Both the position numbers and the translations under genes were made by a program. Below, one piece after another: positions 5,148 to 35,681 of a DNA stretch of 64,000 bases; the first letter of the stretch is position 1; each line of letters begins with the position of its first letter. The DNA is taken from sequence record OR532817.1. One strand, given 5' to 3'. The notes beneath the pieces were generated by a model, which worked only from the letters and a program-made list of their open reading frames with translations, did no database searches and had not been told where the DNA came from.

Positions 5148-5731
5148 TGAATAAGTACAAAGTACTAAAAGTATTACCTTTATCATTTTTAAATTCTTTG
5201 GATCATAATGATATCAAATCAAAAATAGGACATTGTGGTGATTCAAATTTTTTATACTATCCACAAAAAGTAAAAACATTTTCCAAGAATCACAAATGTG
5301 TAGCATGTGGAATCGAAGCCACTGAAGTACGAATTGAATACATGCAAGAGTGTTCTCATGCAATCTATAGCAAACCACACATCAATGTATATGCGGTGCT
5401 TGGTAATTATTCAGTACTAATGACAGTTGATCACGATATACTTGCATCCGAAGGCGGAAATGATTTAGACAATAATTTTAGTACCATGTGTTCCAAATGT
5501 AATAACAAAAGAGGATCAAAGTATAAGACACTCAAATCATTCCTCAAATCAATTGAGGGGCGAGATCTCTTGAAGGAATACATGTCTGTAACTAAAAAGA
5601 CAAAAACCAGTCAGAACGCGGCTGAGCAGCGTTTACACGATGAATTTTGGGAATTAGGACATAACTGGCATTACAGAGAATATCTTCGTTATCTGAAGGC
5701 CAAAAATAAAGATAAAAAGAAAGGGGCATAA
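5147..5731 (+). CDS. HNH endonuclease family protein
   Basis: CVAC...TVDH...GGND..NN..TMCSKCNNKRG. Confidence 0.8.
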   Translation: MNKYKVLKVLPLSFLNSLDHNDIKSKIGHCGDSNFLYYPQKVKTFSKNHKCVACGIEATEVRIEYMQECSHAIYSKPHINVYAVLGNYSVLMTVDHDILASEGGNDLDNNFSTMCSKCNNKRGSKYKTLKSFLKSIEGRDLLKEYMSVTKKTKTSQNAAEQRLHDEFWELGHNWHYREYLRYLKAKNKDKKKGA

Positions 5732-5749
5732 GTTGCCCCTTTACTTTTA
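5720..5749 (+). terminator. intrinsic terminator
   Basis: AAAGGGGCA/TGCCCCTTT stem then T-rich tail. Confidence 0.7.
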
Positions 5750-5804
5750 TCCAAATTTTGTTATAATATAAAAATCAAAATTTAATAAAAATGAGAAAAG
5801 AGTA

Positions 5805-6200
5805 ATGCTCAAAGAGTTTGATTACAGTACTTTAGAAGTTATTTCAGCAGTTAAAAATATCAACAATTTAGATGATGAAAAAACAGTACTAATCACGATC
5901 ACATTTGTAAACAAAGAAGATTCATATAAACATTTATCTGGTATAGAAGAAATGTTGCATAAACTTCATTTAGAAGAAAATCGGAAATATATTAAACTAC
6001 AATGTAGTTATACCCAAAATTTGAACAATTTTTTAATTATAAATAAAACAATTAAAATTAGTTTCAATGATCCAAAACAAAAATACTGTACTAAATCGTT
6101 CAACGAAGATCAGGTTAGTAATGAATTACTAATGGATATTGAATTTATCAATGATTTCTTCGATTCATGTGATAATGAATTGAAAAAAGTATATTTGTAA
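5805..6200 (+). CDS. hypothetical protein
   Basis: 131-aa ORF. Confidence 0.65.
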   Translation: MLKEFDYSTLEVISAVKNINNLDDEKTVLITITFVNKEDSYKHLSGIEEMLHKLHLEENRKYIKLQCSYTQNLNNFLIINKTIKISFNDPKQKYCTKSFNEDQVSNELLMDIEFINDFFDSCDNELKKVYL

Positions 6201-6208
6201 AAAATATT

Positions 6209-6238
6209 TTGAACAATTTTAGTGCTATGTAATATAAT
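6209..6238 (+). promoter_or_regulatory. sigma70-like promoter facing the non-coding island
   Basis: TTGAAC-N18-TATAAT; same TTGAAC...TATAAT pair occurs near 35395. Confidence 0.5.
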
Positions 6239-6244
6239 GTAATT

Positions 6245-6715
6245 AATATCAATTCGAGGACTTAATTCTGCTGAATATCTATGTATATGGATATACAAAT
6301 AAACTTGAACCTATCGAAAACGTAGAGAGGCATTTGAGTGGTTCAGCAGCACGCCTTGCAGGTAGTACCGGTGATAAAATCCTAAGTGTGAGCTTACAAA
6401 GCACAGCCTTAATTCCAGAGAGTGCACAGGAGTCATCGCAACACGGCAAGTAAAAGAGAGCTATAGACATATGCTTTCCATCACTATAATCCTCTGGTGA
6501 TGATAGATTGAACCTACGGAAAGTATTTTCCATAATTGTTAAGGGAGAATACACCAAAATTTTTACAGTAGAGTTGCGTCTAAATTTTGTTGTGTTCAAG
6601 TACTGAGATTGGTCAAATAGTCTCAGTACTTAGTGTGTGGCATGATACCTACTAAACCACATGACCTCTGCATAAGACTGAGATAGGGAGAAACCGGGCA
6701 GACCGCTTCCGTTCT
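6245..6715 (+). ncRNA. candidate large structured non-coding RNA, family unrecognised
   Basis: no + strand ORF; ~41% GC (hand count 6301-6720); several stems with G-U pairs (6479-6502, 6547-6597, 6598-6631); upstream promoter. Confidence 0.55.
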
Positions 6716-6759
6716 TTATAAAAAAGAAATTCTCAATTTGACAGTTTCGAAGACTACCA

Positions 6760-6990
6760 TCTTCAAGAAATAAAAAAAAACGTTTTAAGAACGCGTTCCG
6801 TTGCGTTTTTTTCTTCCCTCCCTGTGGGGGGGGATATAAAGTTTCTCTCCCAAACCTCTTCAAGAAATAAAAAGAAAACAAACAACAATTACCGAATAAA
6901 ATCAAATAACACAGAACGAAACGAAGTGAAGTGAATGAGTTATTTGATTTTATGAGAGATGTGTTGAACGAAGTGAAATACATCTCGACA
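6760..6990. repeat. inverted/direct repeat cluster (origin-like)
   Basis: 15-bp perfect IR 6896-6910/6939-6953; 10-bp IR 6956-6965/6977-6986; CTTCAAGAAATAAAAA direct repeat near 6761 and 6858. Confidence 0.65.
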
Positions 6991-7228
6991 TGGATAAACA
7001 ATATATACTTAATTAACAAAAACAAATCAAGTATTGAAATAAATTACAAAGGAATTACATCTAATGAATACTAAAAAAAGAACCAGATATAATTAAGTAC
7101 TGAAATTAGTTAATTAGTTCTCTTTTTAAATAACCGACTTTAAATTAGTCAAATCAAATAAATTCATTTAATAAAAAGAAATAAATATTTCTATAAATCC
7201 CATACCAAAGGACTTATAGGAGAAATTA

Positions 7229-7678
7229 ATGCAAGAACCACAAGACATAAATCAGTTACGCAATTTAATGGATTTCATAGTACAATCAGAAGAAGACGAG
7301 TCCTATGATCAATTACTGCTTACATTTATTGAAAATAGTTTATTCCTTGAATCAGCAGCACACAACTGGCATTTACAAAGCAAACACTACACAAAGCACT
7401 TACAATTAGATGAGTTATACAAAGAACTACCGGAGTTCATTGATGCATTCATTGAAGGAATTATGGAATCAAGAGGGCCATTAGTAATTGGTACTGGAAA
7501 TAGTTACCAATTCACTGAAATAAGTACTTGTATTCCTACTTTAGAAGAGTATCTAAATCAATGTGAAGCAATTCACCAGATGCTTGAATCTAATGAGGAC
7601 TATGGAAGTACTAACACGCTTGAAGACATAATGAGTTTTATTGATGGTGTTCTTTATAAATTAAAACATTTACAATAA
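7229..7678 (+). CDS. ferritin/Dps-like four-helix-bundle protein
   Basis: HNWHLQ...HLQLDELY...IDAFIE resembles Dps HW..H..LDE.Y; AGGAG RBS; TAAATA at 7182. Confidence 0.65.
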   Translation: MQEPQDINQLRNLMDFIVQSEEDESYDQLLLTFIENSLFLESAAHNWHLQSKHYTKHLQLDELYKELPEFIDAFIEGIMESRGPLVIGTGNSYQFTEISTCIPTLEEYLNQCEAIHQMLESNEDYGSTNTLEDIMSFIDGVLYKLKHLQ

Positions 7679-8665: not shown

Positions 8666-9157
8666 ATGTATACTGTCATTTTTGTATCACAGCCGTATAA
8701 TAATGAAGATGATTATTCAAAAAGTACAGATGGTTCTATGACAATCAAGAATTCAAATTCTAAATTGGAAACAAATAAGATTATCCATGAATTGATTAAT
8801 GATTATTATCATAAAGATAATAAAAACACAGCATTAAATCATTTAGATTATGGTGATTTCGGCCTGGTCGTATTACTTGATGGTTGTGTACTACAAGAAT
8901 TCAACATGAATGATATTGATTACAGTGATTTAACATCACCAATTGAAAGTAATGATTATTTTGACATTAAATCAATTGATAATAAAGTTTCCAAGAACAT
9001 TAGTAATATTAACAAATTTGCTCATGATTTTAAACTTGAAGAATCTAATACTTTCAGAAAGTTGAAAACTATGTATCAGGCGATTGAAATGGAGAAAAAT
9101 GAACGTAGACAACTTAGTATTTTATTAGAAAAATATCCAGATATGGGTGGTAGATAA
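8666..9157 (+). CDS. hypothetical protein
   Basis: GAGGA RBS, ATG 8666. Confidence 0.7.
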   Translation: MYTVIFVSQPYNNEDDYSKSTDGSMTIKNSNSKLETNKIIHELINDYYHKDNKNTALNHLDYGDFGLVVLLDGCVLQEFNMNDIDYSDLTSPIESNDYFDIKSIDNKVSKNISNINKFAHDFKLEESNTFRKLKTMYQAIEMEKNERRQLSILLEKYPDMGGR

Positions 9158-9483
9158 TGGCATTGCGTTCAATAAAGAAATATAGTGCAACAACAAAAAT
9201 AATCAAAAAAGATGGTTATGATTTAGTACTGAAACCTGAATATCAATATATTAAAAATGCTATCTTTGAAATGCCATATGGTGCTAAAAGAAGAAAAATC
9301 ATTCTTGATATGTTAAGAGAAGGTGTTGAATTTAAAGTTAATGGTATGCATGATATCCAAACCAAAAATGATCCAGATATTAAACGATTGTTGAAGTACA
9401 AGAAAATAGAGATGTTTAATGTGAGAAGTGGTTCATGGTCAGATCGTAGTAAACATACATACTTGAGGATTAAAAATGGATGA
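9157..9483 (+). CDS. hypothetical basic protein
   Basis: TAATG overlap. Confidence 0.7.
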   Translation: MALRSIKKYSATTKIIKKDGYDLVLKPEYQYIKNAIFEMPYGAKRRKIILDMLREGVEFKVNGMHDIQTKNDPDIKRLLKYKKIEMFNVRSGSWSDRSKHTYLRIKNG

Positions 9484-9646
9484 AAATGATTTAGAAATTT
9501 TATTAGCAAATAATCTAAGTATTGAGATCAGTACTGAAGATGATTCATATGAAGATATGGATGGTAATATTGTTCGTAGAAATCATATTACTGTTAGTAT
9601 TTTATACAAAGGAAAGGTAATAAGCACAGATATTAGTACTGTATAA
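9476..9646 (+). CDS. small hypothetical protein (56 aa, not in ORF track)
   Basis: GAGGA RBS; MDENDLEILL...STV fills the gap before tdk. Confidence 0.6.
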   Translation: MDENDLEILLANNLSIEISTEDDSYEDMDGNIVRRNHITVSILYKGKVISTDISTV

Positions 9647-9657
9647 GGAAATACAAA

Positions 9658-10233
9658 ATGAGTTTGATTTATACTTTCGCGGTGATGGCCGCGGGGAAAA
9701 GTACACAATTATTACAAAATGCATATAATCACAGTAAAAATGGATTAAAAGTACTGTATTATACAAGTTCATTAGATAATAGATATGGTGTAGGAAAAAT
9801 AACATCAAGAATTGGTATTAATGCAAATGCTGAGGTGATTCCAAAAGATGATCTTTCAGTACTGCAAAATATCATCGAACTGTTGAAGAAAGACGACTAC
9901 GTTGCTATTTTTGTTGATGAGTGTCAATTTTTGAATTCAAAACAGGTTGACTTTTTGAGTGATATCGTTGATAATTACGAAATAGACATTTATTGCTACG
10001 GCATTAAAACTGACTTTGAAGGTAAGTTGTTTGAAGGTAGCAAACGATTAATAGAAATTGCTGATTCCGTTAAAGAATTGGAAAATTTATGTGAAAATCA
10101 TAAATGTAAAAACTTAGCTATTATGAATGCTCGTATAGTCGATAGTACTGAACAAGTACTGATCGGCGGTTCTGAAGCATACAAAAGTTTATGTAGAAAG
10201 TGTTATAAAAATCATATTTCTAAAAGAGGTTAA
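9658..10233 (+). CDS. tdk: thymidine kinase
   Basis: AVMAAGKST Walker A, FVDECQF, YGIKTDF, IGGSEAYKSLCRKC. Confidence 0.95.
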   Translation: MSLIYTFAVMAAGKSTQLLQNAYNHSKNGLKVLYYTSSLDNRYGVGKITSRIGINANAEVIPKDDLSVLQNIIELLKKDDYVAIFVDECQFLNSKQVDFLSDIVDNYEIDIYCYGIKTDFEGKLFEGSKRLIEIADSVKELENLCENHKCKNLAIMNARIVDSTEQVLIGGSEAYKSLCRKCYKNHISKRG

Positions 10234-10237
10234 TGCA

Positions 10238-10465
10238 ATGAAAATCATTAAAAATATTTTCACTCGCGTTGGGGAAGGTATTGTTGAATCTTTTTCTTTT
10301 ATGTTTGGCACAGCCTGTAATTTAATTGCAGTACTGTGGTTTTCTTTGGCTTTACATTTTGTTCCAGTGTGGTTTATTGCTACAGTTATAATTGTGATTC
10401 TGTTAGTGGTAATTTATTTTACATATAAAGATGAACTCGATTCAATTAAAGAATCCGATGATTAA
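10238..10465 (+). CDS. small membrane protein
   Basis: two hydrophobic segments. Confidence 0.65.
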   Translation: MKIIKNIFTRVGEGIVESFSFMFGTACNLIAVLWFSLALHFVPVWFIATVIIVILLVVIYFTYKDELDSIKESDD

Positions 10466-12251: not shown

Positions 12252-12386
12252 ATGAAAGGATTACGAAATTTTACATATGCTACGTACATTGCAATACGTA
12301 CTAGTTACGAAATGAACCCAGTACTGACTATTGCACTTGGAACAGTTACTGTACTTTTTGTTTTGAGTATATTTGGGGTTATTTGA
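12252..12386 (+). CDS. small membrane protein (44 aa, not in ORF track)
   Basis: AAGGA RBS; MKGLRNF...LGTVTVLFVLSIFGVI. Confidence 0.55.
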   Translation: MKGLRNFTYATYIAIRTSYEMNPVLTIALGTVTVLFVLSIFGVI

Positions 12387-12388
12387 TA

Positions 12389-12595
12389 ATGTCTGTAAAA
12401 ATCAATGCTGATATTTATTGTAGTGGTGCACCGAACTATTTTATTTTTGCAGTAAGTACATCTTATGATAGTAAAGGTGATTCTTATACTTTGATTAATA
12501 ATACTCATTGGGTACGTACAAGTAACCCTATTGATATTTCCGAATTATCAAAATATTATAGTATTGGAAAAGACAGTATTTTTGTAAACAATTGA
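12389..12595 (+). CDS. hypothetical protein
   Basis: ATG 12389, coupled. Confidence 0.6.
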   Translation: MSVKINADIYCSGAPNYFIFAVSTSYDSKGDSYTLINNTHWVRTSNPIDISELSKYYSIGKDSIFVNN

Positions 12596-12605
12596 GGAAT
12601 ATTAC

Positions 12606-35353: not shown

Positions 35354-35359
35354 TAAGCA

Positions 35360-35396
35360 AAAAGACGGACTTTTTAATGTCCGTCTTTGTTTTTTT
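35360..35396 (+). terminator. intrinsic terminator
   Basis: AAAGACGGAC/GTCCGTCTTT + T tract. Confidence 0.75.
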
Positions 35397-35459
35397 GAAC
35401 AAAATAAATATTCCTGATATAATTATTATGGAAAATCACATTTACAAGGAAAGTGTATT

Positions 35460-35681
35460 ATGGAAAATGAAAATGTCCAACTTGAACTAGTTGATCTAAT
35501 CAATGCAGCAAAAATTATGGAACACGCAATTAAACTAAATGTCTTCACCGTAGAAGAACTGGTTTCTGTTGCTCCAGTAGTATCTAAATTTATCAAATTC
35601 GCTAATAATGCATTACAAGACTCTCAGAACCAGGATTCTGAAAATTCAGAAACCACAGAAAGTGGTGACGTAAATGAGTAA
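35460..35681 (+). CDS. hypothetical protein
   Basis: 73 aa; TTGAAC...TGATATAAT promoter upstream. Confidence 0.7.
   Translation: MENENVQLELVDLINAAKIMEHAIKLNVFTVEELVSVAPVVSKFIKFANNALQDSQNQDSENSETTESGDVNE

Follow-up and report, generated by a model that had tools for sequence, protein, structure and literature searches.

The locus analyzed here raises the question of what is encoded in a gap of 1,028 nucleotides (nt) between two genes of a jumbo phage. The gap (positions 6201-7228) is part of a 64,000-nt stretch of sequence record OR532817.1, called the window in the following, and separates a gene for a DUF7325 protein (5805-6200, plus strand) from one for a DUF5856/Dps-like protein (7229-7678, plus strand). 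By BLAST the window was assigned to the Klebsiella jumbo phage RCIP0023 of the RaK2 group (100% identity over the 1.9 kb around the element in question), and the same 1.9 kb occur with 94.7-99.5% identity in the phages Muenster, KP13-7, RaK2, phiKp_21 and K64-1, which are jumbo myoviruses of the genus Alcyoneusvirus with genomes of about 350 kb. An earlier note on this DNA had proposed a structured RNA of about 470 nt at 6245-6715. Conservation and covariation, together with a conserved promoter, strongly support the reading that the element is a large, previously unrecognised structured non-coding RNA (ncRNA) on the plus strand. Its extent, its true pseudoknots, its paralogs and its homologs in bacterial islands are new information beyond that note.

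Conservation and covariation of the RNA

The gap contains no open reading frame (ORF) of at least 75 amino acids (aa) on the plus strand and no conserved ORF, in agreement with the gene-free stretch of about 1 kb described before. On the minus strand, the ORF 6630-7025 is frameshifted in five of six close relatives, the ORF 6279-6599 is broken in phiKp_21 and interrupted by a run of N in K64-1, and a Pfam search gave no match for either. Both were rejected as genes because they are not conserved among close relatives and match no Pfam family, and the frameshifts in 6630-7025 together with the missing Pfam match led to the rejection of a coding role of the element as well. Among seven close relatives the conservation of 6245-6770 is about equal to that of the flanking genes, and the sequence 6990-7200 is variable and rich in insertions and deletions. 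The guanine plus cytosine (GC) content rises as noted earlier and amounts to 41.4% over 6301-6720, compared to 33.1% for the window as a whole and 20-24% in the flanking DNA.

A BLAST search with the gap yielded short, specific matches in other jumbo phage genera, each situated in an unannotated gap of 650-850 nt or more. Alignment of these gaps revealed about a dozen conserved blocks, which follow each other in the same order from the promoter to well past 6715. Since the full-length MAFFT alignment was too noisy for RNAalifold, the structure was analyzed domain by domain on 21-53 sequences, most of which were less than 93-97% identical; a first segmentation based on anchors failed because one module occupies two alternative positions. 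Some 54 distinct sequences of the family were assembled in all. Shuffled alignments and slid pairing partners served as controls, and paired positions scored per sequence are termed cells.

The 3' domain comprises 40 pairs in seven helices including two pseudoknots, PK1 and PK2, which emerged from an all-against-all scan of the alignment columns. In 51 distinct sequences 96.5% of its cells were paired, compared to 75.8% in the shuffled alignments and 36-47% with slid partners. Compensatory changes were present in 32 of the 40 pairs (432 cells), and the covariation score was 0.607 versus 0.211 for the shuffles and less than 0.11 for the slid controls. The 5' domain (6298-6458) contributes 16 pairs with 97.1% of the cells paired (shuffles 79.5%, slid partners 25-49%) and compensatory changes in ten of them; in the segment 6446-6552, nine out of ten pairs were compensatory across the family. 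Conservation and covariation in related jumbo phages, which the earlier note had suggested as a check, were thus found, the conservation extending over 71 records.

The plus strand folds better than shuffled sequences (z = -3.75), and the minus strand does not (z = -1.11). Many positions form G-U pairs in some members and A-U or G-C pairs in others, which only an RNA of the plus strand tolerates, so the strand given in the note is confirmed by the fold and by the G-U pairs. The helices listed there were recovered as inverted repeats (the 16-bp helix and hairpin Ha in Table 1) or, in the case of 6479-6486/6495-6502, in the minimum free energy (MFE) fold. The long-range complement ACTTGAAC/GTTCAAGT (6303-6310/6594-6601), taken as a hint at a pseudoknot, had to be given up: one to two 8-mers of this kind are expected in 476 nt by our estimate, no covariation was seen, and its arms lie inside other helices. 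The expectation of a pseudoknot as such was borne out by the covariation of PK1 and PK2. The TTGAACCTA repeat (6305 and 6508; 13 of 15 positions identical) is close to chance by our estimate and is not conserved.

All helices from P-a to He and both pseudoknots are formed in the window copy, several of them by way of compensated changes. Its PK1 and PK2 also differ from the family consensus by compensated changes (two in PK2, with the consensus GUUGC/GCAAC), which indicates that the divergent Klebsiella-phage copy is under the same constraint. In this copy the block a5 has diverged, and an additional hairpin as well as a long insert are restricted to the lineage. In the family, peripheral hairpins and one insert occur as several interchangeable types, and a module, UACAnnAnAGnUnCGUC, is present in one or two copies per RNA at alternative positions. 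Long unpaired stretches are fully or nearly invariant, namely GAAAAnGUA, the AAGGGA of UAAGGGAG, GACCGUUG and GAUAG..AGAAAC.G...A..CCGCUU. The core motif GATAGRRAGAAACMGRRYARMCCGCTT within the three-way junction is present at 6682-6708. A covariance model of the core, R1, scored 80.5 bits at 6632-6745 as its sole strong match in the window, whose sequence was among the 27 training sequences; neither this model nor a sequence search detected a second family copy in the 64 kb.

The sigma-70-type promoter reported in the earlier note was found again by a promoter scan (Table 1) and is conserved in the family: irrespective of the gene upstream, nearly all members are preceded by a -35-like TGrrAC and a TATAAT box, an extended -10 element (TGnTATAAT) is present in 33 of 50 members, and the same promoter elements precede the copies in bacterial islands. 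As the promoter is kept regardless of the neighbors, the RNAs look like independent units read by the host sigma-70 polymerase. The start of the transcript is placed at about 6245 from the position of the promoter, and both transcription and transcript ends are deductions from the sequence.

At the 3' side, the proposed extent of about 470 nt proved too short, because the 3' part was cut off; the element runs about 100-150 nt further. The conserved covarying structure reaches about 6765 and the conserved sequence about 6865, and two more conserved hairpins follow up to 6986. The RNA would accordingly be about 520 nt long up to where the covarying core ends, about 567 nt up to a terminator-like site, and about 620 nt or more, up to about 640 nt, with the 3' extension. 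The terminator-like site, whose hairpin and U7 span 6790-6812, is a candidate 3' end that stayed below the threshold of the terminator scan. A T-run of at least five occurs at its position in 25 of 50 members, and a canonical hairpin with U-run could be read by eye in a few. In the 3' extension, the hairpin has five invariant G (6827-6831 in the window) and varies solely by C-to-U changes, which give G-U pairs on the plus strand. A motif with the family consensus YCGUCAR, which reads CUUCAAG in the window, is present twice (6758-6767 and 6855-6864), about 97 nt apart; in the window this similarity extends to a direct repeat of 38 nt (6743-6780/6840-6877). Both copies changed in concert in three divergent lineages, represented by the window and the contigs L118 and L097. 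The GAACGAAGUGA shared by the loops of the two downstream hairpins was found nowhere else in the window at the stringency used. Similar hairpins follow other family members, and they may be part of the RNA or a separate element.

Distribution in jumbo phages and bacterial islands

Homologs were detected in all RaK2-like jumbo phage genera searched. A BLAST search with the copy of phage GAP32 against 50,697 phage records gave 278 places in 71 records, exclusively of this clade. Most genomes contain three to five places, and four or five paralogs are usual; with this query each phage of the RaK2 group has one, matching over a 62-nt core only. Judged from these matches, the window holds the single and most divergent copy in its genus. 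In other genera the homologs occupy at least three different genomic loci. Locus A, upstream of a Dps-like gene, is that of the window and recurs in E. coli phage WPEC3. At locus B a hypothetical gene and a Dam methylase gene follow downstream (GAP32, EJP2, Serratia BF, Salmonella Munch), and locus C is situated beside endonuclease VII (UE-S1, CBB). Further loci exist, for example in XaC1.

With a degenerate core pattern of 27 nt, 33 stretches were found in IMG/VR, 53 in metagenomes and seven in bacterial genome assemblies. Nearly all IMG/VR matches come from contigs of about 350-380 kb or fragments of 109-174 kb, the best-sampled of which have three to four copies. A very divergent member is located on a metagenomic phage contig encoding a Thg1-like tRNA-His guanylyltransferase (L097:7128-7780), and the family may extend past the RaK2-like clade. 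A search of plasmids gave no match to the family.

Homologs also occur, as single copies in integrative islands, on chromosomal contigs of Enterobacter, Silvania, Buttiauxella, Serratia and unclassified Enterobacteriaceae, and one further homolog was found on a 2.8-kb contig whose assignment to Clostridium may be a binning error. These copies lie in gene-free gaps of 1.3-2 kb with a GC content below that of the surrounding DNA. At 16 loci we identified parts of one module, which consists of a large serine recombinase, variable cargo, the RNA, a CI-like repressor, a Cro-like helix-turn-helix (HTH) protein and a protein of 286 aa (p286); the recombinases are of several unrelated types, and the RNA is convergent with the CI-like repressor gene. 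Hydrophobic N-terminal stretches of p286 were read by eye as membrane-spanning, and the protein received no assignment from Pfam, PHROG, PADLOC or NCBIfam. The island L065:3733-14033 carries the module with CI-like repressor, Cro-like HTH_35 protein and 286-aa protein, as well as a gene for KwaB (Kiwa) within the locus, and may be a satellite or defence island. The same module is present in L081, L120, L077, L110, L114 and L116 beside varied serine integrases.

Among 5,426 complete E. coli genomes, two had a partial match. The chromosome of E. coli LR-29-1 harbors a different island beside ffs (L123:4753-15647), with the RNA copy in a 1.4-kb gap (8830-10259), a tyrosine integrase disrupted by IS3, and genes for DUF4326, DUF488 and dual-OB-domain proteins. 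Directly downstream of this RNA lies a gene for a membrane protein distantly similar to p286 (24% identity, expectation value E = 6e-6). Replication genes were not encountered in the island parts analyzed. In a phylogenetic tree of the RNAs, the island copies nest within one paralog clade of the jumbo phages, which points to transfer between phages and islands sharing hosts. As the comparison of the copies shows, the RNA was duplicated and diversified within giant phages and exchanged with islands, its core being under purifying selection.

Relation to known RNAs and possible function

The comparison with Rfam by Infernal, likewise suggested before, gave no family match. No hit reached the gathering threshold of Rfam 15 in a cmscan of the whole window, only chance-level hairpin matches were obtained for 6100-7300 at E up to 10, and ten diverse homologs gave neither a relevant nor a recurring sub-threshold match at E up to 5. 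ARAGORN detected no tRNA gene and no tmRNA in the 64 kb. As the earlier note had it, no tRNA, tmRNA, RNase P or intron could be matched, and group I and II introns, RNase P RNA and tmRNA were rejected on the grounds of the covariance models and ARAGORN. Likenesses to a hammerhead (GAUGAG...GAA), a kink-turn and the P4 of RNase P, seen by eye, were dropped since they are not conserved in the window copy or occur in the wrong order.

Among other large RNAs, OLE, HEARO (the omega RNA of IscB) and raiA share the size and a conserved structure with invariant junctions, which imply a sophisticated partner or activity, but none of their models matched the window or the homologs. HEARO/omega RNA was rejected because of the missing model match and because the neighbors differ between loci; an IscB/TnpB-type gene is not consistently adjacent, and an HNH gene (194 aa) lies upstream at some loci only. 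ToxI and pseudo-ToxI resemble the family in being RNAs common to a chromosomal element and to phages of the same hosts. However, ToxI is an array of 36-nt repeats beside an endoribonuclease gene, and the new family is a single RNA of about 600 nt without tandem repeats or such a gene; a ToxI-like type III antitoxin RNA was rejected, as 6150-7250 contains no tandem repeat array and the neighbors are the DUF7325 and DUF5856 genes. For phage PA5oct, abundant "long non-coding RNAs" of 236-619 nt from ORF-free regions have been found by RNA-seq (PMC7318152). PA5oct is related to the RaK2 clade, so phages of this kind do make long ncRNAs; its ncRNA001, 002 and 004 did not match the core model R1, and three of the four PA5oct ncRNAs were rejected as homologs at the core. 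Our literature search found no description of the RNA, although fragments of it could be among the unnamed viral RNAs of a large catalog of candidates (PMC10690425). The family is absent from Rfam 15 and, as far as searched, new to the literature, and thus probably a new one.

ROOL and GOLLD, to which the earlier note had compared the element, form RNA-only multimeric cages as determined by cryo-electron microscopy (bioRxiv 10.1101/2024.12.08.627333). The likeness is a general one: RNAs of several hundred nt with many helices and pseudoknots, encoded by free-standing genes in phages or prophage-like elements, large, ornate and phage-associated. The new family matches neither Rfam model in sequence or structure, even at the permissive thresholds given above for the window and the ten homologs, and has multiple paralogs per genome. 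ROOL and GOLLD occur mainly in phages and prophages of Firmicutes and often near tRNA genes, whereas this family is found in jumbo phages of Enterobacterales and in islands, the window is free of tRNA genes, and the sequence motifs differ. That the element is a divergent member of either family is hardly credible; of the former proposal, a large phage ncRNA of a new family probably stands, and ROOL/GOLLD is left as a loose analogy.

Few large RNAs have a pseudoknotted, highly conserved core, and historically those that do have proved to be ribozymes, guide RNAs or self-assembling particles. In the course of events that we propose, the host RNA polymerase would read the RNA rightwards from the promoter at 6209-6238, probably as soon as infection begins. 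With its many helices, its two pseudoknots and its long unpaired stretches of invariant sequence, the folded transcript would act in trans as the core of a ribonucleoprotein (RNP), as a self-assembling scaffold or as a catalytic RNA, binding or sequestering a partner where phage, host and competing mobile elements are in conflict. Action in trans is deduced from the differing neighbors at the various loci and from the convergence of the RNA on genes in islands. The early host-type promoter, the paralogs with an exchangeable periphery and the defence-carrying mobile elements fit an RNA that binds a partner in takeover or conflict, and the location of island copies beside integrases, repressors and defence genes ties the RNA to conflict between phage and host or phage and satellite. 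We therefore lean, with some reserve, towards a trans-acting folded RNA (RNP core, scaffold or ribozyme) with a role in such conflicts. More tentatively, the family could represent a hitherto undescribed class of large functional RNAs, either ribozymes or cores of an RNP or RNA-only assembly, which giant phages of Enterobacterales would use as several specialized paralogs within the first minutes after infection and which islands might have captured to sense, mimic or exploit these phages.

Several points weigh against the conflict reading. The role in conflict is derived from the context, i.e., the early-type promoter, the several copies and the Kiwa-carrying islands, and our literature search found no expression data for RCIP0023 or its clade. 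The sole candidate for a partner protein is p286, of which no homolog was found in phages, and it was for this reason rejected as a partner common to phages and islands. Moreover, a T-run of at least five, interpreted as terminator sequence, parts the core from the conserved 3' extension in half of the members, and the repeated motif evolves in concert; each of the two could reflect processing or a function at the DNA level.

In the main rival explanation the element would be the primer RNA of a replication origin, with a transcript of about 570-620 nt forming a persistent RNA-DNA hybrid at its G-rich 3' part and priming DNA synthesis, comparable to ColE1 RNA II, T4 ori transcripts and the mitochondrial CSBII primer. 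ColE1 RNA II, a primer precursor of about 550 nt, is of comparable length and has the same layout of a promoter plus a structured RNA with a G-rich element near its 3' part, and a structured transcript of about 550 nt with its own promoter can be read from the sequence of the element. T4 has several replication origins; in this clade, whose replisome is T4-like, the copies scattered over each genome (up to five) would be multiple origins, and the islands, in whose analyzed parts replication genes are missing, would carry a helper-type origin. The invariant G-run near the 3' end, embedded in very AT-rich DNA, would suit this as well. But two pseudoknots and long invariant junctions far exceed the needs of any known primer RNA. 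RNA II has no pseudoknotted core of such complexity and is paired with the antisense RNA I; in the promoter scan, no antisense promoter of this kind was found inside the 5' part of the element, and the only promoter-like sites on the minus strand, 6243-6216 and 6201-6172, are both upstream of the deduced RNA start. The C-to-U changes opposite the invariant G suit an RNA hairpin and not a hybrid, the genes keep their direction across loci A and B, and there is no switch of GC skew at the locus, although skew in phages mostly tracks transcription. We consider an origin primer rather unlikely.

Processing is central to the idea of a self-processing or catalytic RNA, whose core would be a ribozyme and whose two YCGUCAR copies would be sites of cleavage, ligation or excision. 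Large ribozymes typically have such a size, pseudoknots and many invariant unpaired nucleotides, all of which are found here; the joint changes of the two motif copies in the window, L118 and L097 agree with this idea, and the first copy lies in a hairpin whose 5' arm could serve as a guide. Set against the lack of a match to any Rfam ribozyme family, the failure of the hammerhead and RNase P likenesses mentioned above and the absence of a direct sign of processing, it is unlikely. Alternatively, the island RNA could be an antitoxin or sensor working with the membrane protein, and the phage copies decoys, as pseudo-ToxI is for ToxIN. In two island types the RNA is indeed followed by the weakly conserved putative membrane protein, KwaB of Kiwa is among the island cargo, and the nesting of island RNAs within one phage paralog clade would be in line with mimicry; yet the phage RNAs are far more diverse and sit at syntenic loci across genera, so that phages look like the older home, tandem short repeats like those of ToxI are missing, and the membrane protein has neither a PADLOC match nor a phage homolog. 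A defence-module RNA or its mimic thus appears improbable. The catalytic and the defence explanations are special cases that the data cannot separate.

Finally, the position upstream of the DUF5856/Dps-like gene on the same strand, with the same layout in E. coli phage WPEC3, would fit a long structured leader or cis-regulatory element of this gene. Paralogs precede unrelated genes or converge on genes, and the RNA is separated from the gene by a terminator-like site plus some 350 nt of AT-rich, variable DNA, which makes a leader highly improbable. Cis-regulation was rejected because the downstream genes differ between loci and the island RNA converges on the repressor gene. The element is neither an mRNA nor a leader.

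Features and annotation of the locus

The features of the RNA and its surroundings are compiled in Table 1.

Table 1. Elements of the ncRNA gene and adjacent features with their positions in the window.
Feature	Position	Strand	Evidence
Sigma-70-type promoter, TTGAAC-N18-TATAAT	6209-6238	+	promoter scan; same place upstream of nearly all family members
ncRNA core: 5' leader hairpin, 5' domain, central module, 3' pseudoknotted domain, closing hairpin	6245-6765	+	homology, covariation, z-score
5' leader hairpin, after conserved UCUG...AAU	6275-6294	+	MFE fold; hairpin of differing sequence at same place in other members
Hairpin P-a, conserved loop GAAAAnGUA (6316-6324)	6310-6330	+	3 of 4 pairs compensatory; example pair AU 12, CG 7, GC 4; one A-G mismatch in window
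Short hairpin P-b (6338-6340/6350-6352), after conserved UGAG	6338-6352	+	100% paired, 2 of 3 pairs covary
Helices P-c (6355-6359/6446-6450) and P-d (6369-6375/6432-6438)	6355-6450	+	covariation; P-c 99% paired, 3 of 5 pairs covary (GC 14, CG 9, UA 2; AU 16, UA 10); P-d 100% paired
Hairpin GAGAGC/GCUUUC, window equivalent of covarying family helix	6456-6478	+	sequence and MFE fold
Extra hairpin CAUCAC../..GUGAUG, Klebsiella-phage lineage only	6479-6502	+	MFE fold
Hairpin GGAAA/UUUCC (6518-6531), then invariant UAAGGGAG (6540-6547)	6518-6547	+	equivalent helix covaries (AU 14, GC 10)
16-bp helix enclosing conserved module UACAnnAnAGnUnCGUCU	6547-6597	+	inverted repeat 6547-6562/6582-6597 (16 nt, 88%)
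Long hairpin Ha (6599-6608/6621-6630, extendable to 6611/6618)	6598-6631	+	covariation, 10 of 10 pairs compensatory (11 of 13 on second alignment); inverted repeat 6598-6608/6621-6631 (11 nt, 100%)
PK1, Ha loop GUCAAAU pairing with AUUUGAC	6612-6618/6736-6742	+	7 of 7 pairs covary, 98.9% of cells paired
Hairpin Hb (6634-6638/6659-6663)	6634-6663	+	4 of 5 pairs covary
PK2, UCUGC pairing with GCAGA in loop of helix Hd	6667-6671/6698-6702	+	100% paired, 4 of 5 pairs covary
Three-way junction, most conserved sequence of family GAUAGGGAGAAACCGGGCAGACCGCUUCCG; helices Hc 6679-6683/6731-6735, Hd 6686-6690/6706-6710, He 6713-6715/6725-6727	6679-6735	+	covariation, covariance model
Hairpin GAAGA/UCUUC, ending in first motif copy	6749-6764	+	read by eye
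Terminator-like element: A-run, hairpin AACGC/GCGUU, U7	6774-6812	+	sequence, inverted repeats
Conserved 3' extension: C-rich/G-run hairpin (6818-6822/6827-6831), second motif copy (6851-6864)	6816-6864	+	alignment
Two downstream hairpins (6896-6953, 6956-6986), both loops with GAACGAAGUGA	6896-6986	+	inverted and direct repeats

Helices P-c and P-d flank conserved internal-loop residues and enclose the lineage-specific insert 6376-6431, whose type and length vary between members. The coordinates of the hairpin 6456-6478 were taken from the sequence and the MFE fold, since the window row is misaligned in that segment. The adjacent extra hairpin is missing in the other genera of the alignment, and its identity in the seven close relatives is uninformative. 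The AAGGGA that follows the GGAAA/UUUCC hairpin is invariant in all 27 sequences. Within the 16-bp helix, the change G6594A in close relatives converts a U-G pair to U-A; the outer stem was not confirmed by deep covariation, as the alignment is unreliable there, and the enclosed module UACAnnAnAGnUnCGUCU is conserved in sequence and occurs once or twice per RNA at differing positions. The hairpin 6749-6764 is kept elsewhere with other sequences (GACGA/UCGUC and UCGAU/AUCGA, by eye). A helix of CUUGAA (6304-6309) with UUCAAG (6859-6864 or 6762-6767) that would close the RNA was dropped, because its 5' arm fits the lower stem of P-a better. In the relatives with locus B, a hairpin terminating the upstream gene is placed just past the -10 box of the RNA's own promoter and would therefore make up the 5' end of the RNA.

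The RNA occurs in well-studied jumbo phages that are candidates for therapy, including RaK2, K64-1, 121Q, PBECO4, GAP32 and CBB, in whose genomes the locus was left blank or annotated with short hypothetical ORFs. In at least 70 phage records the ncRNA should be annotated and the spurious ORFs deleted. The single copy in the RaK2 group makes a clean knockout feasible, and the E. coli phages offer laboratory hosts. In the records of Muenster, K64-1 and WPEC3, three to five short "hypothetical proteins" of 21-142 aa are drawn over the RNA gene and the rest of the gap; they are located on either strand and differ from record to record. Such calls across the RNA gene in public records are almost certainly spurious. 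In the K64-1 record the RNA contains a short deletion with a stretch of N (equivalent to 6348-6373 of the window), which is probably a problem of the assembly and not biology.

Besides the gap, the window contains only two stretches of at least 250 nt without an ORF of at least 75 aa on either strand, 12252-12605 and 35354-35673. Upstream of the two genes that border the gap, spanin genes and the HNH endonuclease gene (194 aa) are encoded. A bidirectional terminator-like hairpin at 5720-5742 is followed by a promoter-like sequence, TTTACT-16-TATAAT with TG (5740-5767), for the DUF7325 gene.

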